Notes: a model not told the origin generated them from the letters alone. DNA of 63,311 nt, filler included, from Octopus bimaculoides (GCF_001194135.2; 5 parts of 5 records of this genome joined end to end with filler, not necessarily neighbours in it), one strand, 5' to 3'. Counted from the whole stretch's first letter, positions 1 to 29,504 are shown. Translations and numbers: made by a program.

Positions 1-1507
1 TATATATATATATATATATATATATGTTTATATATGCCTATATGTATGTATATCTTTATATATATGTATGCATTGATGTATTGATGTATAAGTGTGTATG
101 TGTGCATTAAAATATCTGTGCGTATGCATATATGTATAAATGTATAAATGTAAGCGTGAGTGCTAGGTGGAAACTAAAACAATAAATTGTTTTATATTAG
201 TATTATTTTGGTCTCGTGTATGCATACAATTTATTTTTCTATGTCCGTATAGAGTTAGTTTCGTTTATAGGTATCGATAAGTATATGTATGTGACTAAAT
301 GAATAATGGGGTATATATGTAGCTATAGCGTATTTATCGTATTTAGTTTGTTGTTTGGCTCGTTGTTAGTATGTGGGACATTTTGTTTATATTGTATTAT
401 TTTACTCTTTTTCTAAGTATATATTTAGATTATTGATATTTCGCTGAACGTATCGAATTGATTTTGTTTATCTCCCCTGCATTCTAATAGATTAATAATA
501 TTTAGATTTGAATTAATATATAAAATAAGACTTTAACATAAATAGATACAGATGTGTATGAATTGTATATGTATGTAAATTTTTAAAATATATGTGTACG
601 TGAATATGTATCTGAGTATACGTACATGTGTGTGTAAGTATGTATACATAAATGATAGGAATATGTGTACATATATAAGTATATATAAATATGTATATAT
701 GAACGTGTGTATTGTGCAAAAAATCGGTTATAGAAGGGAATATTTATAGATTTAAATTTATGAGTTTACCTCTTATAAATTGTTTTCGTAAAGCCTACTA
801 GTTCTCACGTGCAACATCTTGCATGTTAAAAACCTATATGGTCTTATGCATCCAAGAAATGTGGTATCGTGCAAATTGATGTAATGTTTGCATTGCTCGA
901 TTAAATGGAGTCGCCTGAAACGGTCGTAATGTACCAATACCTTGGCATCATTCTTACTCATTCACTTCTTATTCATCTTACTTCAAGCTGTGCTGATGTA
1001 ACCGGACTGACTTGGTGACTCAACCTAAGTACGTAATTCAACTGAACCTTAACTATTTCTTACATATATAGTTATATATATAATAAATGTATGTGTTTAG
1101 GGGGAGGGTTATAAGTGTTATAGATTTTCTTTGTATATTCTATATTCCATGATTGAACCCGATGGAATAAGAAGCAAATTTAAAACTAAATAAGTACAGG
1201 TGTCTATTTGGTCATCTAAAGCATTCAAAATGGCCGCAGTCATGCTCTACTTAAGAAATAGAAATCAGTTTGACATGAGCTTCCCTGACAAAAAAGTACA
1301 CATTTTAAATTTAAAAAACAATAGGGATTTTTATAGTGTTAATATTCAACTGGGAACGCTAAGATTTGTATTTTCACTTCTAAATCGGAGCTAACTAGAG
1401 TTAAATTTAAAACTGAAGAGGAAATATTGTTACAAGGACAACGTAACAATGATATGGAGAAATTGTAATATATGAGCTACATTAAACAGATTCAAATATA
1501 TACTCAC

Positions 1508-1658
1508 GGAGGTAAACATGTTCCGAGAAATTTCTTTGTGGCGTTAACGTCTTTAACTCCTTTATAGATGCAGGTGTGAGTCCAGCAAGCCCACCCGTCC
1601 CTGATGATCGTCCATTTTGTGCTTTCAGTAACACATCTGCCATCAACCTTCTTACAAT
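1508..1658 (-). CDS. Secreted Cys-rich protein, copy 1: exon 3, (Y)CKKVDGRCVTESTKWTIIRDGWACWTHTCIYKGVKDVNATKKFLGTCLP(P)
   Basis: Acceptor cataacaacag, donor CC|gtgagt, 151 nt, phase 1-2, open frame. A paralogue of identical length lies at 15094-15244. Confidence 0.85.
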
Positions 1659-1703
1659 CTGTTGTTATGAAAATATATCAATTATTCTATTAAAACTATT
1701 TCT

Positions 1704-1934
1704 TATTTCTTTATTGCCCTCAAGGGGCTAAACATAGAGGGGACAAACAAGGACAGACAAAGGAATTAAGTCGATCACATCGACTCCAATGCGTAACTGG
1801 TACTTAATTTATCGACCCCGAAACGATGAAAGGCAAAGTCGACCTCGGCGGAATTTGAACTCAAAACGTAACGGCAGACGAAATACCGCTAAGCATTTCG
1901 CCCGGCGTGCTAACGTTTCTGCCAGCTCGCCGCC
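1704..1934 (-). mobile_element. tRNA-type SINE, near-consensus copy with 14-bp target-site duplication
   Basis: Member of a family seen repeatedly in the window (GGCGGCGAGCTGGCAGAAACGTTAGCACGCCGGGCGAAATGC...). TSD TTAAAACTATTTCT at 1690-1703 and 1935-1948. Confidence 0.85.
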
Positions 1935-3258
1935 TTAAAACTATTTCTATGACATAATTCAAGTCAGAAAGCTAGAAAAATTCCGATAAACTAATATGCC
2001 CGGCGTGCTAACTATTTTGCCTTCTCATCGTTTCAGTTACTGATATTCTGATATATGTTTAGGTAACGTAAATTGTTATGCGCATTTTTATATTGAGTTC
2101 ATATTCTTAAAATCGGAATAGATTAAAGTAATCGTTTTCATAGTTTGTAGTTCGTTTTAAGGACAGGTAGAAGAGATTTCTGTATCATAAAAGGTATTTG
2201 AAGCCTTATATTATAAGTTGACTTCTTGTTAATCCTAAATTTTCATCATTATATAAATATATTAATTTTTTTAACTTTAATTCTTTTATTACTATAATTA
2301 TTTCTTTACGTATTTGTTCACACCGCCATTCGCTGAGTTTCTAATCTTTGACTTTATAATTTTTCTATAATATATTATTTAAACATACATTTTGCCTGAA
2401 CACCATAAACTGACATCAATATCTCATGGATTTTCTGCCTTTTACATTCAAAGTATGTGTGTTTAATTTATGTCTGGTTATAGAGAATTAGCATTTTATT
2501 GCATCATTTATACATTATATTAAATTCTGATCATTCTAAACAATTATTCTTTAAATATTTAAACGTTCTATCCATTTCTTAATATATTTTTATAGATTAT
2601 ACTTTAATACTTTATATACATTTTACTTATATTTTTTTAAAATTATTTTAAACCTAGTATGGTTTATCCCAATTCTGTCTTTCTGCAGTCCCCTTTATAG
2701 GTTGTTCATTTTTTACTCTCTATCTTCTATCAACTCCTCTATTAATAAAGTATTAGCAACTTACTGCATAACTTAAATAATATTTTATTTCTATTAACTA
2801 TAATCTACTTTTCTTAATTCTTAATCTTAATACTTTATACATTTTACGCCAGTTTCTTTCTATTCTGTACTTCATTCGGAATTTATTTTTCTTATATTTT
2901 CTTTATTTCTCTATTTTCTCTGTTTTTATTTATCTTCAATTCACCTAAGCTATATTCTTTCAAAACGATCAAATGTTGTAACATTCTTGACCATTTTTGT
3001 CTTAAATTCTAAATGCTAGCTTCCTGCTTTAATTTTTCCGGGCACATGTAACCCATTAGATTTCTCCTTCATTTTCATTTCATTTTCATCTTTATGTCTC
3101 ACCATATCACATTCTAAGTCCACTAGAATACGTATACTGGCTAACATGTGATAATTCTGTGATTAAATCACACAATATTTTAAACGACTAATTCCGATTC
3201 TCATATTGTAGTTAATTTCAGATATTTAAACAAACATTCATGTTCGAGATGTGTACAC

Positions 3259-3745
3259 ATGCGCGTGTAGGCAGAAATGTTCATAGGCTGACTGTAAGTA
3301 AGTGATCCTGGAACTGTGAAGTCTTGCATGCGTCCATTTCAGCTTTTCATAATAATGACTGTATTGTTTGTTTTCTTGTTGTCTTTTGTTGTTCAAATCA
3401 ACTGTCATCTGACTATTAAATAGTTGAGACTTCTCTTGAACATGGAGAAAATGTATTACCTCCAGGAAAAAGGTTTATCCCCCAAAGTTATTCACGCTAA
3501 CACGATTGGTACATTAGTGAATGGTGATCCATCTTTATCAACTCATAGTACATAAGTGAGCAGCTGAATTTTAGAGGGGAATAGAGAATAGTAAAGATGA
3601 TCCAAGATCTAGACATCTTGCAACACCCACTACCGACAAATACATTGGTCGTGTTCATCATATGCTGATGGAGAAATGGCGAATGACTATAAATCAAATA
3701 ACCAATGCTATCCGATTTCTGCATGAGATATTTCAGCACCAGAAA
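3259..3745 (+). mobile_element. 3'-truncated mariner remnant, paralogous to 17702-19026
   Basis: Left TIR-like end (...ttcataggctgac) and degenerate transposase N-terminus (atggagaaaat...). It aligns with 17702-18190. Confidence 0.75.
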
Positions 3746-4101
3746 TGCATATCCCATGAGATGTCTCTGCCCACCAGAAACGTTAGTGCATCTGCCAAAA
3801 TGCTTTACGGTATTTAGATGCCTTTTTTACGCACTGAGATTTAGCGCTATTGTGTTGAACATTAAATTTTGTCACTTAAGTTCAATAAACGAAGAATCAG
3901 TCGTTTACTTGGGTTGATATAACCGTCTACGAGTTGGGGTACATCAATACCACAAGCACCACTGGAAGATGGTCAGTAAATAAGAGATATCGAACAAGGC
4001 CTATCCAATTCGAATCAAAGCAAATATAAAACTTCTTTGAGATTTTGATATATCAAAACACGTAGTGAAGAGAGGACACAAAAGTTTGTTTATCAACTTA
4101 C

Positions 4102-4242
4102 ACAAATTTGTTTCATTTACTGTCATTTCACCATCAATCCACTCGCATATTCTCCTGGCACAGGTATCGAACATCTTTTCCACCCATTCTTCTCCGTTAT
4201 TGCGGCAATTACCGTCCACGATACATCCATATCCACGACACA
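4102..4242 (-). CDS. Secreted Cys-rich protein, copy 1: exon 2, (V)CRGYGCIVDGNCRNNGEEWVEKMFDTCARRICEWIDGEMTVNETNL
   Basis: Acceptor ttttatttag, donor T|gtaagt, 141 nt, phase 1-1, open frame. A paralogue at 19935-20069 has the same splice sites and conserved Cys positions. Confidence 0.85.
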
Positions 4243-4689
4243 CTAAATAAAAATACATATATTATGATAATATCTACTCAGCAATATTAGATATTTTACA
4301 ATACAGATTTTTTTTATAAACTAGGAGAAGTAAAGATGGTTCTAATAATATCCAACAGAGATCATATCTTTTACTTCCTTCCAAATCATATATGAAATTC
4401 AGTCGGATCTTTTACCTCTTTACTGGGTCCTGTTTTGGATAAGACAAATACCTGAGAGAAGTATATTGATACCAATTTAATGAACAGATACGTTCCTCTA
4501 CAAAGATTTCCTCTACGTATAGGCGTGATTTGAAAAGACCAAAAACTTTTGGTGTGAAGTGTTGAACCGCATAAAGTATTGGACACTCCGGTATTCAGGT
4601 CTCGGTGTAGGCGTTGTTTGTTGGCTACAATTTGTGAACGCTAAAATATAAAACTAATAATAACAGCGTTTTCTACTGTCCCTAGAAAA

Positions 4690-5850
4690 ACGTTATTTAG
4701 GAACACTAGAAATCAAGAGAGGCATCTTCCAAGAGAAATGCCTGTCCCCACTGATCTTTGTACTGTGCATAGTATCACCAGCACTGAGGAAATAAAAGGC
4801 TGTGTGCGTATTCAAAAGCCGCCAACAAAATGTCAACCACTTCTTTCTCATGGATGACCTCAAACTTTATGGTAAAGATGAATCCCAAGTCAGTTCCATC
4901 GTTGACAAGGTGTATACTTTCAGTGTTAATATCCGAATGGATTTCGGACTGAAAAAAGTGTGGTGTGTTAGTCTTGAAGAGAGGCAAAATCAAATGTACG
5001 GACGGGCTAGCGATTCCATCGGTGGATGTAAAAGAGACGGGCTATAACTAATTGGGGATATTGGAAATGGATAAATTGATGGAGAAAGAAATGACAGAAT
5101 AAATTAAGGTGGAGTAATTGTGTTTACTGAGACTGATCCTTAAGTCGAAATTAAACGGACAGAATAAGATTGAAGCTATCAATACCTAAACGGTTTCACT
5201 CCTTAGATATGGAGCAGCGGTAATCGCACGGACAGCAGATGAACTAAACAGCTTAGATAGAAAGACGAGAAAGTTGCTGACTAGATACGTGATACTCTAT
5301 CCAAAACGTGACACAGACTGTATGCACCAAGAAAAAGAGAGGGAAGAGGAGAGATTGGATGCGAAAACAGCATTAGAACAGAAGAAAACAACATAGTATG
5401 GGTATGTAACAAAATGCACACAACCACTCTTATTTGAAGTAAAAAGGTTAAGATTGTGTAGGATGGACGTTTGTAAACATAAAACAATATACAAGTACGT
5501 GAGAATGAATGAAACTGAAAATAGGTGGATAAAGAAAAGAATTCATGGACATTTTCATAGGGATGTTGAAGATAAGACAGACAGAGAAAATAGATGGCTG
5601 TGGATGACTAAAAGTGATTTAAAACGGAAACGGAGGCTCTAGACTGTACTGCCCAAGAGCAAGCACTATCAACGAATTACATAAAATACAGAATAGAAAA
5701 CACATCAGAAAGTGCTTAGTGCAGAATCTATGGACAACATGGTGAAACCGTATAGTATATTACCAGTCGATATACGCCACTAGCCAGAAAGAATATGAGA
5801 TATATCATGACAATATAGCAAATATTGTCATTGGAGACTTTGCAATGCCA
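4690..5850 (+). mobile_element. R4/Dong-like (restriction-like endonuclease) LINE remnant: RT C-terminal half plus zinc-knuckle region
   Basis: Frameshifted motifs IKRGIFQ..CLSPLIFVLC, NHFFLMDDLKLYGK, ILKSKLNG.NKIEAINT and HGHFHRD...WLWMTKSDLK. Confidence 0.8.
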
Positions 5851-5899
5851 AGGTCAGCGCTCTCATTGATCGCTAAAATAGTAAACACATTTGACCCAA

Positions 5900-7280
5900 A
5901 GTTGTGAGGTTTCTTTTGTCGAAATTAATGACTATGATACTCTAAAACTGAGTATAGACAAAGAATTGAAAGTCACAGATCTTAGAATGTATCGCCGATA
6001 GTATCTCCCCAAAATTAGAATTGATAATAAAACCATATCAATGATAAATAACACGAACCTGGACGTCACAGAACTAATGGGCGTAGAAAGAAACGTCAAT
6101 ATGACCAGGTTAAGGTATATAGTATATGCAGCAGGGTCTGTAACTGCAAAAGACGGTAGATATCCCCTCAAACCCATCCAAACAGACGTACCACCACACA
6201 GACAAGGCCTGTGGATAAATAATATCCAGGAGAAATAGAAAATAAAAGTATGTGTCCATCTTTAACGTTACTAGAAAACAATCAACATTACAAAGCAGCA
6301 ATAAAAGAAAAATACTACGCAAATACAAAATTACAGAACTTTTAATTTATTTCTCGACAAAATCTTTTCCTGTTTCGGCAGTAAGGAGCGCTACAATAAG
6401 CACCTCTCTCGGTGGTGATGTGCCCGCCCGACCCACACCCTCTACCATCTTCCCATATGTTCAATATCTACCCCGCTTCCGTGTTTATAACCACTTCTAA
6501 CCTGTCCTCTTATTCCTCCTGTCGGTCTGAATGGATCATACTAAACTTGCTATGTAAAAAGTCTTCCCGGCCTCCCTGCTTGATCTTCTTTTCCTTTTCC
6601 CTTTATTGTTTTCTATCTCTCCCTTTCTCTCTTCTATTTTGTTGTGAATGCCGAGGTGGTGAGGGAAATTCAGCGCTCATCGCTTATAGAATGCCGCAAT
6701 GGCCTGCGCAAGACCTGACACTCAAGACCGACTCCATCGCCAAACCAACAGGAGAAGAGTGAATAAAGTTGGGTATCTGGCGCCTTCAAATAACCAGTGC
6801 TCCGAGTAGGCTGTACTCGTTAACCTTGGATGGCAAGAAGCCTAGGAGAACGACCACTCTGAGTTCAAATCGAGGGGAGCAAGGCTCCTGCCGCCTTGGA
6901 CGATTACCTTCATAGAAATTGTGGCTTTATAAAAATACCGTTGGTAGCAACCTAAAAGCATACCTCAGCTTTGAGTGAAAATAGCAAGCAGAATAGATAC
7001 CGATAAAGGCGTTAACAGGATTGGAATCAGCGGTGAAGGTACAGCTTTCGGTAGGTGCTCCACTGTGCAGCGTCGTAATCCAGCCACTACTAACCATGCT
7101 ACAAGACACAAGTGGAGTAAACAAGACAACATGATGGTTATGGAGTGTTGCTACCGAAGCACGCCAGTGAATGGAAATGGCATGCTTGTCAAAAGGATAC
7201 AGAAAACAAATGCACAGTGAATGGAAGGCAATGGATCTGTTTGAAATTACTCAACAAAGATTATGTGACGAAGCTCACTG
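5900..7280 (+). mobile_element. N-terminal and 5' UTR fragments of R4/Dong-like LINE(s)
   Basis: LRYIVYAAGSVT...PPH (6041-6238) and TRHKWSKQDNMMVMECCYRS...GYRKQMHSEW (7080-7260) resemble the N-terminal region of R4-type ORFs. A more GC-rich leader lies at 6400-7000. Confidence 0.55.
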
Positions 7281-7532
7281 GATGGGAGTATATTATTAGT
7301 TAAGGGGAATATTTAAAATGTACGGCAACATAGGTTATAATTGAAGTAAATGAAACTATCATAAATAAACAATATATTAACAACAATTTACCAACTTCGA
7401 CATCATTGGATATTTCACACACAGACGCAAGTATATATGTAGACATGTGTGCATGTGTTTCTCTTCTGTATTTAATCATTTAAAGTCTTCTGTATGCATG
7501 CAAGAGAAATTCATTATACACACACACGCACG

Positions 7533-7609
<77 letters not shown>

Positions 7610-7754
7610 TAGTATATACATACACATGTGCATACTATTCGTTCAATGTAAATCAAGTATCGGCAATTGTAACACATTCAAAACGTGAAAAGATTTGCTG
7701 CTCAGGCAATTTCGAAATATATTTTCATATATTTTCATATGACTGGCAACTTAC

Positions 7755-7827
7755 CTTTTCCAGGTTCTGCCATATCAACTGTTAATGCTAATAAAGTCAA
7801 CAAGCAAAAGGAATGTAGTTGTGTCAT
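7755..7827 (-). CDS. Secreted Cys-rich protein, copy 1: first coding exon (signal peptide) MTQLHSFCLLTLLALTVDMAEPGK, phase-1 end
   Basis: On the minus strand the acceptor cttccag is followed by ATCAAT and then ATG at 7827. The frame is open with a hydrophobic core FCLLTLLALTV. The donor G|gtaagt is at 7754. Phase 1 joins in frame to the exon at 4102-4242 (G+TG = Val). Confidence 0.75.
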
Positions 7828-8913
7828 ATTGATCTGGAAGTACAAATGTAATTTGAGGTGATCGAACTAGTAACTGTCTTTTTTTATTTCAAGGAAAAAG
7901 AGGAACAACGCAAAGAGATACGTGAGTGTATGCATTCTATACGCATATATTGGTGAGGCTGTGAGTGTATGTGTGTGTGTTTGTGTGTGTGCGTGCGTAT
8001 GTGTATGTATATATATACACCTATCTGTCTAAATGCATATATATATATACATATATATACATATATACATATACATATACATATACATATACTTATATAT
8101 ATATATATATANNNNNNNNNNNNNNNNNNNNNNNNNNNNNNNNNNNNNNNNNNNNNNNNNNNNNNNNNNNNNNNNNNNNNNNNNNNNNNNNNNNNNNNNN
8201 NNNNNNNNNNNNNNNNNNNNNNNNNNNNNNNNNNNNNNNNNNNNNNNNNNNNNNNNNNNNNNNNNNNNNNNNNNNNNNNNNNNNNNNNNNNNNNNNNNNN
8301 NNNNNNNNNNNNNNNNNNNNNNNNNNNNNNNNNNNNNNNNNNNNNNNNNNNNNNNNNNNNNNNNNNNNNNNNNNNNNNNNNNNNNNNNNNNNNNNNNNNN
8401 NNNNNNNNNNNNNNNNNNNNNNNNNNNNNNNNNNNNNNNNNNNNNNNNNNNNNNNNNNNNNNNNNNNNNNNNNNNNNNNNNNNNNNNNNNNNNNNNNNNN
8501 NNNNNNNNNNNNNNNNNNNNNNNNNNNNNNNNNNNNNNNNNNNNNNNNNNNNNNNNNNNNNNNNNNNNNNNNNNNNNNNNNNNNNNNNNNNNNNNNNNNN
8601 NNNNNNNNNNNNNNNNNNNNNNNNNNNNNNNNNNNNNNNNNNNNNNNNNNNNNNNNNNNNNNNNNNNNNNNNNNNNNNNNNNNNNNNNNNNNNNNNNNNN
8701 NNNNNNNNNNNNNNNNNNNNNNNNNNNNNNNNNNNNNNNNNNNNNNNNNNNNNNNNNNNNNNNNNNNNNNNNNNNNNNNNNNNNNNNNNNNNNNNNNNNN
8801 NNNNNNNNNNNNNNNNNNNNNNNNNNNNNNNNNNNNNNNNNNNNNNNNNNNNNNNNNNNNNNNNNNNNNNNNNNNNATACATACATACATACATACATAC
8901 ATACATACATACA

Positions 8914-9556: not shown

Positions 9557-9603
<47 letters not shown>

Positions 9604-9687
9604 AGACAGAGAGAGAGAGAGAGAAAGAGAGAGATAGAGAGAGAAATAGAGAGATACATATATATATATACACACACACAGAGATAA

Positions 9688-9751
<64 letters not shown>

Positions 9752-11639
9752 GGGAGAGAGAGAGAGAAAGAGATGCACAGAAACTAAAAATACAATTAGT
9801 TTAGATCTAGACCTTATAGTTTGTTCTTTACCAATAAAATCAAATCAAAACACTGCCAGGTAACTTTATATTAGGCTCTTTTCGATTTTATGTACTATAA
9901 GAAAGCATTGACGAACAAATAAAAATTTTAAAATCATATCTGAGTTATAATGCAAAACAGTCGTTTAAATATTTCATACAAATTCCATTAAAAAAATTAG
10001 ATACTTTTAGAAGTTCACTTACGTATACCAAAAGGACAAAACTGTGAAGAAATTTAAAAGAATGATGTGTGCCAAAGCGATGAGTATTTATAACTGAATG
10101 TAACACCTCCAATATTAATAAACAGCTGGTGACAATATATCTCAGTCCCAAACCTGAAATGTATAATAATGACATCTTATAAAATACTTGCTGAGAACTA
10201 AAGATATTTTATGGCTCGTAGGGATGTGCAAACAACGGTTTCTTCTTCTGCACCTGAAGTTAAGGAACGGAATAAATAAAGTTTGCCCCAATCGAAACAA
10301 CTCAATAGATAATATCCAAAAGAGATCGATCGATAGATAGATACATATGCGCATGTACAAGCTACGCCAGGTTTTTGAAGACATGTTTCATGAGTTTGAA
10401 TTTTCTTGCTAATACAGGTTTTTAAAGCCTTACATTTCAAGCAACTAATGTAAGACTCGAGATTGTCTCAGCAATTTCAATGGCACGCTACATTAGTTGA
10501 CTTAAAAGCGCAAAATAGTTATAAGGAGATGGCTGCTTGCTGTAAGTTTCTCTTTATTTATTATGTCCCAGACATAATCGATAAAAACATCAGAAAACAT
10601 CAGAAGTCACAATATTCAGTCCATTTGTATCAACATCACACTTCTTCAATTTTCCAAATTTGCGATCATTTTACAATTTACCATTTTTCTGTAAAGAATC
10701 GACACTACACTGCTCAGGAAGCTTATATCTTCTGATATTTTTCTTTCCCACCAAGATAGTTTCTTTCGGGTTTTTTTCCATCAATGTTCTTTTCTCATTT
10801 GATCATCAATACTATTCTTTCGTGGATTACAGCCGGGCCCGTCTCGCTCCACAGTGGAAGACAACCAAGGCGTAGCATCATCCCCATTGGTTCCATTCCT
10901 GTTCATACAGTTATCGTTAGCTATTTTGCTCGGCATTTTCATTTATAAATGAGTTGTATTTTAGCTTACCACCGACGGGTAATTTTATCAAGATATTATC
11001 TCCCGCAAGGTTGCTCACCAAGTTATATCAGTTATTGCTGACCATATGAGAAACAAAAAGGGCATAATTGCTCACAAGAGTATACTGTTGTGAGTGGTGC
11101 AGAGATTATTTAAACGATGAAGGGTTATGATGTATTAAATACAAAAGTGTCAGAATTTATGTTTGACTTCAAGAAAGCTAACCAATGGAGACTAAACTGG
11201 TCATTTTCCTCTTTTAAGTTTGTTTCTCTCCCTGCATCTCTCCCCCACACTCTCTCTTTCTTTCTCTCTATGTCTCTTTCTTTCCCATCTTTGATAAATT
11301 TCAACCCATTAACACATGGACTTCAACCAAACCTAAAAATTCACCTCCCCCTTTTTAGTATGCTGAACGTTTCACCTCCAAATTTTATAATTATAATTAC
11401 TGGACTCTACCCAGTGCTCTATTGGTAGTGTTAATGGCAAGGAGGGAGTAGTAAGAGCCCCTCCACACAGTATATTTCAGTCAACTATCGATGACCTCAC
11501 AGGACAGTTAAAACTTTTCAGTTATTATATAATTAAGATTAATTCTAGGAAAAGGGGTTAAATAAATAGGTAATTAATTATTACGACGTAACGTTTTCAT
11601 TAAGCATTACCTAGAATTATTATCTGTAGTTTTTATTCT

Positions 11640-12300
11640 TTAGTTATCTATGAAGTATAACGTAGAATTCTTACCTGACGTTTTTGTTCTACTTCGCGAA
11701 TGGCAGAATGTGAACCGGTTTTCGTCCCTGTATATTCTGCCTCCTATATCTGGAACGACAGATTTCATTTCCTGTAATAAGTAAAATCTAAACAGGTCGG
11801 TGTCAGGGGCTGAGTTGCTTACACCCATAGTTATGTCAAAGTTATTCATTCTATACTTACGAGTACATATTTTGTTACTGCAAGAGATTATTGTTTTCCT
11901 AGACGTCTGCGTCCTTCGTAGACGCGTGCGTCCTTTCTAGAAAAAAGATGTGTGTTTCATGGCGAGGATTAAGGCCTTAATGTGAAGTATAGGTTTGATA
12001 AATATGTACAATTAGTCAATATCTATGTGTATAAATTCAGTGTGTATTTTGTAAAATAACTTCTTAAACCATTCAATTACGACAGTAGTGTACGACCTAA
12101 GGTCAATATTTCCATGGTTCCTAAATTTTGGGAGCGTTTTATCCATAATCGATTTACCACTTGACCAATATTCGACTTGGATGAGGTAATCAATCTAGTG
12201 CCTATGTCAGAGGTGAGGAATCTCTTTAAGTCTGCAGACCGAATTAACTTGAATTGTGATCTAACAAGGCAGCAACAAAAGTTTCATTATAATTTTTTAA
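11640..12300 (-). mobile_element. Penelope-like element RT remnant
   Basis: Frameshifted motifs SNIGQVVKSIMDK, VIEWFKK, FIHIDI and NNFDITMG...RIYRD, typical of Penelope-like RTs. Confidence 0.7.
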
Positions 12301-12499
12301 ATTCCATATTTTGTAATAAATCTCAGAACTAAAGAGGAATGACTAATTTGAAATTTTTTTTTCATATTTTTAAAATGTAGCATTAAGGTTCGAAGTTTAA
12401 GCTGATCTTCTAGACGGGCGTCCATAATTTGCGACCTGAAGGGACCTTGATTTTGTTTACGTATGAAAATATAAATTCGCAGCAATATGTCGAATAGAA

Positions 12500-25269: not shown

Positions 25270-25570
25270 AACGCATCATCCAAAATACTACCTGGATTTA
25301 CATGGGATTATATCTAAGGGCCTATACCTTCATGGAAATACGGACCAACCTCCATAACCCCTGGAAAAAAGAGATCTGTGAACTTTATTCTCCTGTCTGT
25401 TTTCTTCTATCTTATTTTATTTATTCTTTTATTTTATTCCTTAAACTCTGTAAATTTCCCTGTCTGAAACTTTCATAATACTCACCTTGTCTCTGATGAA
25501 GGAATACCCAATGTATGGACATGCTAGCTTATCACTTGGGATATCCCAGAAACAGATGTAAGACTTGAAA
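25270..25570 (+). mobile_element. Penelope-like 3' fragment (GIY-YIG C-terminal region and 3' end)
   Basis: Degenerate FTWDYI...SWKY...TPGKKR followed by ctgatgaagg...cccagaaacag, an ending typical of Penelope-like elements. Confidence 0.45.
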
Positions 25571-25581
25571 TTTACACTAAC

Positions 25582-25621
<40 letters not shown>

Positions 25622-25987
25622 NNNNNNNNNNNNNNNNNNNNNNNNNNNNNNNNNNNNNNNNNNNNNNNNNNNNNNNNNNNNNNNNNNNNNNNNNNNNNNN
25701 NNNNNNNNNNNNNNNNNNNNNNNNNNNNNNNNNNNNNNNNNNNNNNNNNNNNNNNNNNNNNNNNNNNNNNNNNNNNNNNNNNNNNNNNNNNNNNNNNNNN
25801 NNNNNNNNNNNNNNNNNNNNNNNNNNNNNNNNNNNNNNNNNNNNNNNNNNNNNNNNNNNNNNNNNNNNNNNNNNNNNNNNNNNNNNNNNNNNNNNNNNNN
25901 NNNNNNNNNNNNNNNNNNNNNNNNNNNNNNNNNNNNNNNNNNNNNNNNNNNNNNNNNNNNNNNNNNNNNNNNNNNNNNNNNNNNNNN

Positions 25988-27300
25988 CAGATAACTAGGG
26001 TAAGTGTACATCTGAAATTTCATTTTGAAGGTGATCTTTAAAAAATGATAGCTTTTTTTCCGAAATGCTTCAATTTGTTGCCACATGTCATAAATTGATT
26101 TTGTTTTACCCTGCAAATAAATATTCAAGTCATTTTGCTTTGACATGATATCTCAAAGAAATAGAAATATTCCTATAGAAATATTCGTCCAATAATTCAC
26201 ATTGTTCATTCCTTTCTTTATAAAATTTTCTTATCTACCCGCGTAAACTTGAAAAGTTTACTCACATCTGTGCTTGCGATAGCCAACGAATTTTAGAATG
26301 CACACTGAATACCTTATTGTCTAATCGCAGCATGTTACGAAACTGACGATGCATTGTCGCATCGGCAAGATATATAGTTAACAATATTTATGACATTCTG
26401 CGAAGTGTCACATAAATGGTCGATTTAGCACAAAGGTTTTGCTGGTGCAATACACAATGAAAAGAATTGAGAACATCTGGATCTGATACGACATTTTGTT
26501 TATCTGGGCAATAAATCCTACATGATTTCCATTCACAGAAGGAGCACCGTCTGTGTATACGCTAACTAAATTATCCAAATTCAACCCAACTTCTAGACAT
26601 TCATCCTGAAAGATTGTGAGGATATATATCCCTCGTGTTCCTCCCGTAAGAGTACCCAAAGCCAGTAATTTTTCGTATTAAATAAAATCTTCTGTTGTGG
26701 CACAACCGAAATATGAAACATGCGCCGTGTCAGCAGTATCAGTTGATTCATCCAGAGCGATTGTATAATATGAATTTTCATTTTGAAGTATAATGTGAAG
26801 TTGTTCTGTTACATCGAGGGCCAATTCATGTCGCTGACCTGTTATGGTTCTCCTTGAAAGAGGTAATTGGTTTTACTTCCAAACCTTGTCGGGATCTAAG
26901 CATCCAACGACTTCAACAATACTCTTTCACAATTTCAACATGGCTGAAAGGCTTACGTTTTTTTTTTTTTACCTCGGTGTATAAGCAACTTTATAAGCAA
27001 CTTCTGTGACATAATTTGCAGATTTCGCCACGTCTTAAATAGTTGTCTCTGCTTTTGTCTTCAATTTTTTCATTTATTGCAGAGCAACCTTTCATGCTTC
27101 CCCTCTAATTTGAAATATTTATTATTTTCAAGTGTCGTATAGTGTTGATGTGCGTTGAACGTCTTTAATGTCGTTATCTCAGCAACACAAAGCAAACAAA
27201 TCATTTTTCTCTTTCGAAGACAATTAGTTATACTGCAGTTCCCAATCTTCATTAAAGACCCCGTTTTTCTTACTGGATCATACTCTTAATCGTTTTTCAC
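25988..27300 (-). mobile_element. hAT (Charlie/SPIN, GTF2IRD2-like) transposase remnant, unit 2
   Basis: MICLLC...TFNAHQHY (zinc-binding N-terminus), LVSVYTDGAPSV.G and MSKQNDLNIYLQGK...QIEAF. Confidence 0.8.
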
Positions 27301-29350: not shown

Positions 29351-29504
29351 TGTATGTATGCATGCATGAATGGTGAGAGAGAGAGAGAGAAGAAAACATT
29401 CATACATAGACATACAGTGATGGAGCTAAAGAAAGAGAATACAGGGAGCAAAGATAGGAATAGTTCTTGTTCAGAATTGACAATTAGGAGTAATTCATAA
29501 AATT

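Follow-up and report, generated by a model that had tools for sequence, protein, structure and literature searches.

A candidate tandem-array gene for a secreted ten-cysteine protein in Octopus bimaculoides

The DNA analysed here, referred to as the window, is a stretch of 63,311 nucleotides from Octopus bimaculoides (GCF_001194135.2) that consists of five parts of five records joined end to end with filler. Near its beginning, on the minus strand, lies a spliced gene that we call gene 1. We estimate a probability of about 0.75 that gene 1 truly codes for protein and forms a unit of an octopus tandem array, with three coding exons that would specify a secreted ten-cysteine protein whose loops change at or above the neutral rate. 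The gene is taken to be real, beyond what chance would produce, because a paralogue occurs in the same window, because a RefSeq model contains the same exon junctions, and because a neutral simulation rarely or never retains the features that are conserved among the copies.

The three exons of gene 1 occupy positions 7827-7755, 4242-4102 and 1658-1508. An initial annotation, made from the DNA alone, had proposed three minus-strand exons joined in phases 1 and 1; this assembly was reproduced exactly, down to an identical peptide, and the junctions are now matched by those of the window paralogue and of RefSeq. Exon 1 (7755..7827, 73 nt) begins with an ATG at 7827, encodes the putative signal peptide MTQLHSFCLLTLLALTVDMAEPGK plus one further nucleotide (phase 1) and ends at the donor G/GTAAGT; the exon 1 profile scores 58 bits at this position. 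Intron 1 (4243..7754, 3.5 kb) contains, besides an (AC)n microsatellite, a block (5413-5834) in common with intron 1 of the paralogue. Exon 2 (4102..4242, 141 nt, phase 1-1), bounded by the acceptor TTTATTTAG and the donor T/GTAAGT, encodes V-CRGYGCIVDGNCRNNGEEWVEKMFDTCARRICEWIDGEMTVNETNL, including Cys 1-5 and the sequon N67. Intron 2 (1659..4101, 2.4 kb) is in large part colinear with the second introns of both paralogues described below. Exon 3 (1504..1658 including the stop; coding part 1658-1508, 151 nt) follows the acceptor AACAACAG and encodes Y-CKKVDGRC...GTCLPP, with Cys 6-10 and the sequon N110, after which the DNA continues with GTGAGT. Upstream of the ATG, a block at 7828..7940 (minus strand) aligns with the regions preceding two paralogous first exons in L001, the locus of the RefSeq paralogue described below. 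About 110 nt are kept among three paralogues, including a TATA-like GAAATAAAAAAAG some 65 nt before the ATG, and the block is likely to comprise a core promoter and 5' untranslated region.

The precursor encoded by gene 1 has 122 residues, with a mature protein of ~11.6 kDa. Its hydrophobic core spans residues 7-17 (11-residue Kyte-Doolittle mean of up to 2.6), and cleavage is estimated by eye, from hydrophobicity, to follow T16 or A20, that is, at about residue 16-20. The ten cysteines given in the initial annotation hold by direct count, and its signal peptide is a putative one, seen as a hydrophobic N-terminus in the Kyte-Doolittle scan; one further Cys lies within the hydrophobic segment itself. 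With such an N-terminal exon, the product would be secreted, and the ten cysteines would allow at most five disulfide bonds in the mature protein. Both sequons, N67 and N110, are present in the second window copy and missing in the RefSeq paralogue, and the gene 1 product is probably N-glycosylated. The calculated isoelectric points are 7.7 for gene 1, 6.7 for gene 2 and 5.0 for the RefSeq protein. This near-neutral to acidic range of 5.0-7.7, together with the sequons, argues mildly against a classical cationic antimicrobial peptide.

A tblastn search of the window with the gene 1 product located a second copy, gene 2, also on the minus strand, with 69% protein identity and ~13.6-15.8 kb upstream of gene 1. 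Exon 2' (19935..20069, 135 nt) encodes CNGCMVDGRCRNNGEEWVDKTIDMCSRKICERINGKLTVNETNL; exon 3' (15090..15244 including the stop, coding 15244-15093) encodes CKLVDSSC...GTCVPP and is closed by a TGA at 15092-15090. Gene 2 has the same acceptor and donor sequences as gene 1, the same frame, ten of ten cysteines and the same ending, CCG TGA GTATAT, and is set apart by one in-frame 6-nt deletion. Introns and flanks of the two units are colinear at 71-83% identity. A first exon and promoter block for gene 2 were not found in the assembled sequence by blastn, by a scan for signal exons, by a hidden Markov model of exon 1 or by promoter and ATG patterns. Colinearity puts the first exon near ~23,300, within ~21300-25600 and between assembly gaps at 20757-20766 and 25622-25987. 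The expected site is adjoined by a fragment of a pogo/Tigger-like DDE_1 transposase (23005..23277, plus strand), a 90-aa open reading frame that matches Pfam DDE_1 with E = 5.4e-10. Gene 2 may have been disrupted near ~23,300, or the assembly may be incomplete there.

Protein databases were searched in two ways, by a word-indexed search of 5.8 billion proteins and by an exhaustive HMMER search of 1.84 billion representative proteins. The 122-aa gene 1 product returned no candidates in the former. For the latter, a profile built from the two window exon 3 translations (gene 1 and gene 2) gave one true match, a 129-aa protein (P0002) at 63 bits and E = 1.9e-12; the other four of the five matches were rejected as repeat or low-complexity artefacts. 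In the word-indexed search, a four-sequence family profile again recovered this protein alone, now at 218 bits, and P0002 as a query returned only itself. The match is the RefSeq entry uncharacterized protein LOC128248175 [Octopus bimaculoides], which carries no precomputed Pfam domain and is 55-57% identical to the gene 1 protein. It has a signal exon beginning MTQLLPSC, two phase-1 junctions as in gene 1, an exon 3 ending in CCGTGAGTATATATTTGAA, and a modelled fourth exon. Gene 1 belongs with LOC128248175 in one family by sequence similarity over both mature exons, by exon-intron structure, acceptor and donor sequences included, and by Cys spacing. The initial annotation's claim of a lineage-restricted family that could not be assigned to a named gene therefore stands, as the only relative found in the two protein collections is this one uncharacterized protein of Octopus bimaculoides; the cephalopod origin that it presumed is also correct. 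Its description of the gene as hidden holds for the window copies, neither of which was found as a protein, but not for the family, one paralogue of which is already in RefSeq. Literature searches found no mention of LOC128248175 or of the family's peptide motifs, and the literature on octopus cysteine-rich proteins, Octo-SAP and the squid pheromone contained no matching sequence.

LOC128248175 lies at ~107.0 Mb of CM046606.1 (106,998,605-107,028,227, assembly GCA_001194135.2), a region designated L001, where tblastn of gene 1 gave matches of 62% and 57% identity. LOC128248175 resembles gene 1 in its MTQL signal exon, phase-1 junctions, ten-Cys spacing, and colinear introns and spacers. It differs in that it is not the locus of gene 1 (nucleotide identity is 72-84%) but, judged by sequence, a paralogue or a close relative's orthologue, in an exon 1 that is shorter by 6 nt, in the absence of either gene 1 sequon, and in the extra 11-residue fourth exon. 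L001 holds two additional family exons, at 29414-29486 and 1998-2137. First exons homologous to gene 1 exon 1 are found at 10001-10067 and 29414-29486, the second of these (plus strand) being a further signal-peptide exon, MTRLFPFCLLIWATLKVHMTVADK (MTRLFPFC...). A divergent exon 3 at 1998-2137 (plus strand) encodes CRLINAVCSKIDTSYVTISDDKCWNYTCKYQGDSKIITTVEYAGLC followed by a stop, with the Trp replaced by Tyr. No gene is called at 1998-2137 or 29414-29486 in the gene list of L001. Five family loci are seen in the window and L001 together, and only one of them has an entry in the searched protein databases.

Colinearity between the window and L001 extends across exons, introns and spacers, at 72-84% nucleotide identity. 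The sequence that separates gene 2 from gene 1 (9781..13693, minus strand), for instance, runs colinear with L001 22825-26527, the spacer on the downstream side of LOC128248175, and a portion of it is found again at 25998-27115, upstream of gene 2. This colinearity and recurrence indicate a tandem repeat unit. The further family exons in L001, in conjunction with the colinearity of the two regions, indicate a tandem array, and on this comparison the window appears to be another part of the same kind of array as L001.

The units also contain repetitive sequence. A repeat of ~220 nt, with copies of 80-90% identity in both orientations, occurs at window positions 1705-1924 (just upstream of exon 3), 19398-19607, 24729-24802 and, inverted, 14857-15009, as well as at L001 14774-15005 and 8442-8505; it is probably an element resembling a short interspersed element (SINE) or a miniature inverted-repeat transposable element (MITE). 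Homologous open reading frames (ORFs) at 3497-3757 and 17978-18193, both on the minus strand, encode ...SPF[LI]HQH..N.FVGSGCC.MSRSWIIFTIL... within the conserved intron 2 block, which is also matched by L001 15715-16256. They have no Pfam match and may be what is left of an old mobile element, already present before the duplication.

The spacing of the ten cysteines is identical in gene 1, gene 2 and LOC128248175: C-x2/4-C-x5-C-x14-C-x4-C-x15-C-x6-C-x15-C-x4-C-x17-C. Around this frame the sequences have changed rapidly. Nei-Gojobori ratios of non-synonymous to synonymous divergence (dN/dS) are 1.49 for gene 1 and gene 2 (Fisher p = 0.43), 2.34 for gene 1 and LOC128248175 (p = 0.09), and 2.54 for gene 2 and LOC128248175 (p = 0.012), the most distant pair. 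Substitutions are spread evenly over the codon positions (18/15/13), dN values of 0.20-0.40 equal or exceed the Jukes-Cantor distances of 0.19-0.28 in neighbouring introns, and conservation of the signal exon does not exceed that of the mature region. A neutral simulation of 40,000 trials, in which the observed number of substitutions was placed at random, retained all ten cysteines and an open frame in 0.16%, 0.025% and none of the trials for the three pairs (p = 0.0016, 0.00025 and <1/40,000). The pattern is one of strong purifying selection on a presumed disulfide scaffold; elsewhere, constraint would be relaxed or selection positive, with significance reached in one pair.

Some of the same figures would suit decay. 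If the window copies were degenerating pseudogenes or chance ORFs, the even substitutions and dN/dS of at least 1 would merely reflect lost constraint; the lack of any third-position bias, an exon identity close to that of the introns, a gene 2 with no first exon, and the failure to find either copy in the protein collection are all in keeping with that. Pseudogenes should not, however, hold on to ten of ten cysteines, the frame (with its one indel an in-frame 6 nt), every splice site and the stop across three copies with 16-28% divergence, given a neutral expectation for the cysteines and frame of 0.0016 or less, down to <1/40,000. One family copy is, moreover, modelled as protein-coding by RefSeq, and the promoter-like upstream block is conserved. 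We regard decay as very unlikely.

The initial annotation had ended exon 3 at a splice donor and looked for a missing terminal exon. Such an exon is probably unnecessary. Reading through the supposed donor of gene 1 gives CCG TGA, that is, Pro and a stop (TGA at 1506-1504), and this read-through at 1508 closes the frame at 122 aa. The TGA after Pro-Pro is kept in gene 1, gene 2 and LOC128248175 within the conserved sequence also seen at the end of exon 3 of the RefSeq gene. The string CCGTGAGTAT, at window positions 1500-1509 and 15086-15095 and at L001 18628-18637, reads both as Pro-stop and as a 5' splice-site consensus; RefSeq splices at it in one copy only, in its model of LOC128248175. 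Most likely, the coding region of gene 1 ends at the TGA right after Pro-Pro, with no need of a terminal exon.

A fourth coding exon, with exon 3 spliced at CC/GTGAGT and a short C-terminal tail added, has in its favour that GTGAGT is a perfect donor on the intron side and is conserved, and that in the RefSeq model of LOC128248175 exon 3 is followed, after 957 nt, by an exon encoding QVIEDTQNKTA. We consider it somewhat unlikely for gene 1, as several observations run the other way. No homologue of that exon was found in the window downstream of either gene by blastn-short or tblastn; the donor is poor on its exon side (TCC); every copy reads Pro and then a stop on read-through; and the divergent paralogue at L001 1998-2137 stops upstream of the donor site, with a TAA directly after Cys10. 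The tail would bring no extra Cys, so that the mature scaffold is unchanged either way.

Exons 2 and 3 contribute five cysteines each, and the initial annotation saw in them copies of a repeated motif that suggested exon duplication. The portion C-x6-W-x7/8-C-x4-C of this motif is correct, while the spacing before it is C-x1/2-VDG and not C-x2/3-VDG. More broadly, the spacing C-x5/6-C-x14/15-C-x4-C recurs in both halves, and each has an aromatic residue at the seventh position beyond the second Cys. The case for duplication itself turned out weak. The two halves of gene 1 align only over VDGxC-x6-W, 12 residues, with a shuffle p of 0.04, or 0.09 when cysteines are fixed, and a profile of exon 3 does not detect exon 2, which scores at noise level. 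A duplication would agree with the symmetric phase of the exons and is possible, although it is unproven by these alignments.

The protein had also been likened to von Willebrand factor type C (VWC), single-domain VWC (SVWC) and beta-microseminoprotein (MSMB/PSP94) modules. This resemblance did not survive comparison with profiles. With gene 1, gene 2 and LOC128248175 as queries, Pfam at E up to 10 returned no VWC (PF00093), SVWC or PSP94 (PF05825), nor any further named module of extracellular proteins; sequence and profile searches of the PDB at the same limit gave chance matches and no MSMB or VWC chain, and a search of NCBIfam found no match. Probabilities from hhalign were 0.2% against human MSMB and 0.15% against the VWC domain of COL2A1, both reference sequences having been entered by hand. 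VWC domains are defined by CxxCxC and C-terminal CC(xxC) motifs, and no CC, CxC or CxxCxC occurs in gene 1, gene 2 or LOC128248175. VWC and SVWC membership was rejected because there is no profile match and the defining motifs are missing. Membership in the beta-microseminoproteins was rejected because neither a profile nor a PDB chain matches and the Cys pattern differs (five plus five, with no CC or CxC).

There are grounds on which gene 1 might nevertheless be thought a divergent member of one of these families. Its size, ten cysteines, two exon-encoded halves, signal-peptide exon, tandem copies, and exons that evolve faster than introns all recall MSMB, and a squid MSMB-like pheromone of the egg capsule has been reported (PMC3268785). 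The G-E-E-W that follows a Cys is a faint echo of VWC. Against this stand the Pfam, PDB profile and hhalign results, none of which lends support, a family Cys pattern with no CxxCxC, CxC or CC, and a division of cysteines of five and five between the halves, where the disulfide layout of MSMB implies seven and three (PMC3268785). Homology to VWC, SVWC or MSMB is accordingly extremely improbable.

DUF7478 (PF24290) is the only Pfam family matched. With the mature gene 1 product the score is 23.6 bits (E = 6.8e-5), and with that of gene 2 it is 17.1 bits; the scores of the window family, 23.6, 21.8 and 17.1 bits, are all below the curated gathering threshold of 27 bits, and LOC128248175 has no match in Pfam to this family. 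The match covers profile positions 71-149, some 76 residues in the C-terminal half of a 163-position domain, in the same register in both genes. Nine shuffles with fixed cysteines and the reversed gene 1 sequence gave no match, the best unrelated score being 13.5 bits. Replacement of all cysteines by Ser abolishes the match. Single Cys-to-Ser changes cost 0.8-5.3 bits, with a sum of ~24 bits, and for six of the seven cysteines within the match the cost is 2.6-5.3 bits each, indicating Cys-favouring columns. Removal of either conserved Trp raises the score. No paper mentioning DUF7478 or PF24290 was found in literature searches.

If these scores reflected descent, gene 1 would be a distant member of the cysteine-rich DUF7478 and hence not confined to octopus. 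That the match is unique in Pfam, keeps its register in both genes and is lost on shuffling or reversal speaks for this, as do the Cys-preferring columns at the family's own spacing; in addition, the 14 residues that follow the match equal the 14 positions left in the profile, which suits a protein that ends at Pro-Pro. But the score remains under the 27-bit cutoff, LOC128248175 is not matched, the summed Cys contributions of ~24 bits account for the whole score so that the other residues add nothing, and the conserved Trp residues detract from it. Nor is the match of gene 2 independent, as its protein is 69% identical to that of gene 1. Descent from a common ancestor with DUF7478 is thus unlikely, and what the model and the octopus family have in common appears to be Cys spacing and little else.

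Structure prediction was uninformative. AlphaFold2 models of LOC128248175 reached a predicted local distance difference test (pLDDT) score of 45.9 with a three-deep alignment that included the window exon rows, and 43.4 from the single sequence, and are unusable. A Foldseek search of the better model against the PDB gave nothing below E = 0.6, only noise.

We return to the reading of gene 1 as a functional unit of a tandem array. In each unit, exon 1 would supply the signal peptide and exons 2 and 3 five cysteines each, to give a secreted and probably N-glycosylated product of ~100 residues and 11-12 kDa with up to five disulfides. As the most likely mechanism, a rigid disulfide scaffold would then present variable loops to a co-evolving extracellular partner, and duplication together with diversifying selection would generate a repertoire of loop variants. 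Tandem arrays of secreted, disulfide-rich proteins with fixed cysteines and a changing remainder typically mark molecules at the interface with prey, pathogens or mates. By analogy, conserved cysteines amid fast divergence fit a secreted scaffold under diversifying selection, as in proteins of venom or saliva, immunity, reproduction or chemical communication.

Several points weigh against this reading. The case for the gene is built from genomic sequence and a RefSeq-predicted protein. Gene 2 has no detectable first exon. An excess of dN over dS is significant in one pair only, with dS based on only ~55 synonymous sites, and the other pairs fit relaxed constraint outside the cysteines; gene conversion among tandem copies could also distort the rates. 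The GTGAGT after exon 3 may be a real donor in gene 1, as the window edge is only 1.5 kb downstream and an exon is possible beyond it. Finally, the display of loops is an idea to which the models, from which no fold is predictable, give no structural support.

A stronger formulation, that gene 1 and gene 2 are two unannotated members of an octopus-restricted family with an undescribed disulfide-rich fold, arranged in a tandem array and under positive selection, is tentative, and we would place it somewhat short of even odds. Were it true, the family would be a candidate cephalopod-specific component of venom or saliva, a mucosal immune effector, or a signal in mate or egg recognition, and potentially a functional analogue of the squid beta-MSP pheromone while unrelated to it. 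To our knowledge, very few molecules of such interfaces have been characterised in octopuses. If expression proved specific to a tissue such as salivary gland, skin or sucker mucus, oviducal gland, or testis and spermatophore, the genes would be direct candidates for functional work. New in the present analysis are a further copy of the gene, its tandem arrangement, a paralogue in RefSeq, a stop codon shared by the copies, and exons that change no more slowly than the introns while the Cys frame stays invariant. So far the family has been represented by a single unnamed protein that RefSeq predicted by computer. Invertebrate genomes commonly contain orphan families of this type, and short spliced genes of this kind are under-annotated, as the single family locus of five in the databases shows.

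The window as a whole is AT-rich animal sequence (33% G+C) with microsatellites, assembly gaps (one more of them at 8112-8876) and transposon debris, and Rfam and tRNA scans of it found no match. Related ORFs at 21381-21725 and 22163-22423, both on the plus strand, encode ...NRKPDIV...C..ID...P.D.N...KE.EK...Y..L... and have no Pfam match; they are reminiscent of the C-terminal part of retrotransposon ORF2 proteins. Long microsatellites occur at 20430-20857 ((AAT)143), 16549-16842 ((ATAC)74), 14325-14427 ((TAT)35), 9558-9751 ((ATAG)49) and 7518-7592 ((AC)38), several of which abut assembly gaps and yield long spurious ORFs.

Among known systems, DUF7478 appears to resemble the octopus family in Cys spacing over ~76 residues and differs in that it matches neither the residues other than Cys nor the conserved Trp of the family. 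To VWC, SVWC and Vago proteins the likeness is a loose C...G-E-x-W...C in octopus exon 2 only, whereas the defining motifs are missing. Conotoxins follow the same mode, as multigene families with invariant cysteines and a hypervariable mature region. MgCRP-I of Mytilus is likewise described as a multigene family with invariant cysteines and a hypervariable mature region (PMC4558851). Both MgCRP-I and conotoxins differ from the octopus proteins in being much shorter, with six cysteines and a pre-pro organisation in which the signal and pro regions are highly conserved, and are unrelated to them in sequence. The Cys pattern of MSMB includes CxCxC and CC, and its fold combines a Greek-key N-domain with a four-stranded C-domain. 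MSMB/PSP94, MSMP and USM are secreted proteins of ~95-100 residues, with ten disulfide-forming cysteines and two exon-encoded halves after a signal-peptide exon; three disulfides of MSMB lie within the N-terminal domain, one lies within the C-terminal domain and one links the two (PMC3268785). The MSMB/USM group is also known for tandem duplicates, for exons whose rate of evolution equals or exceeds that of introns and shows no bias towards third positions, and for conserved cysteines, and in the squid Loligo its member beta-MSP is an egg-capsule pheromone (PMC3268785). The octopus proteins have no sequence or profile similarity to MSMB, and their Cys pattern and its split between the halves differ. 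The MSMB/USM group is nevertheless the closest functional and evolutionary analogue of the octopus family, alike in behaviour and not homologous.

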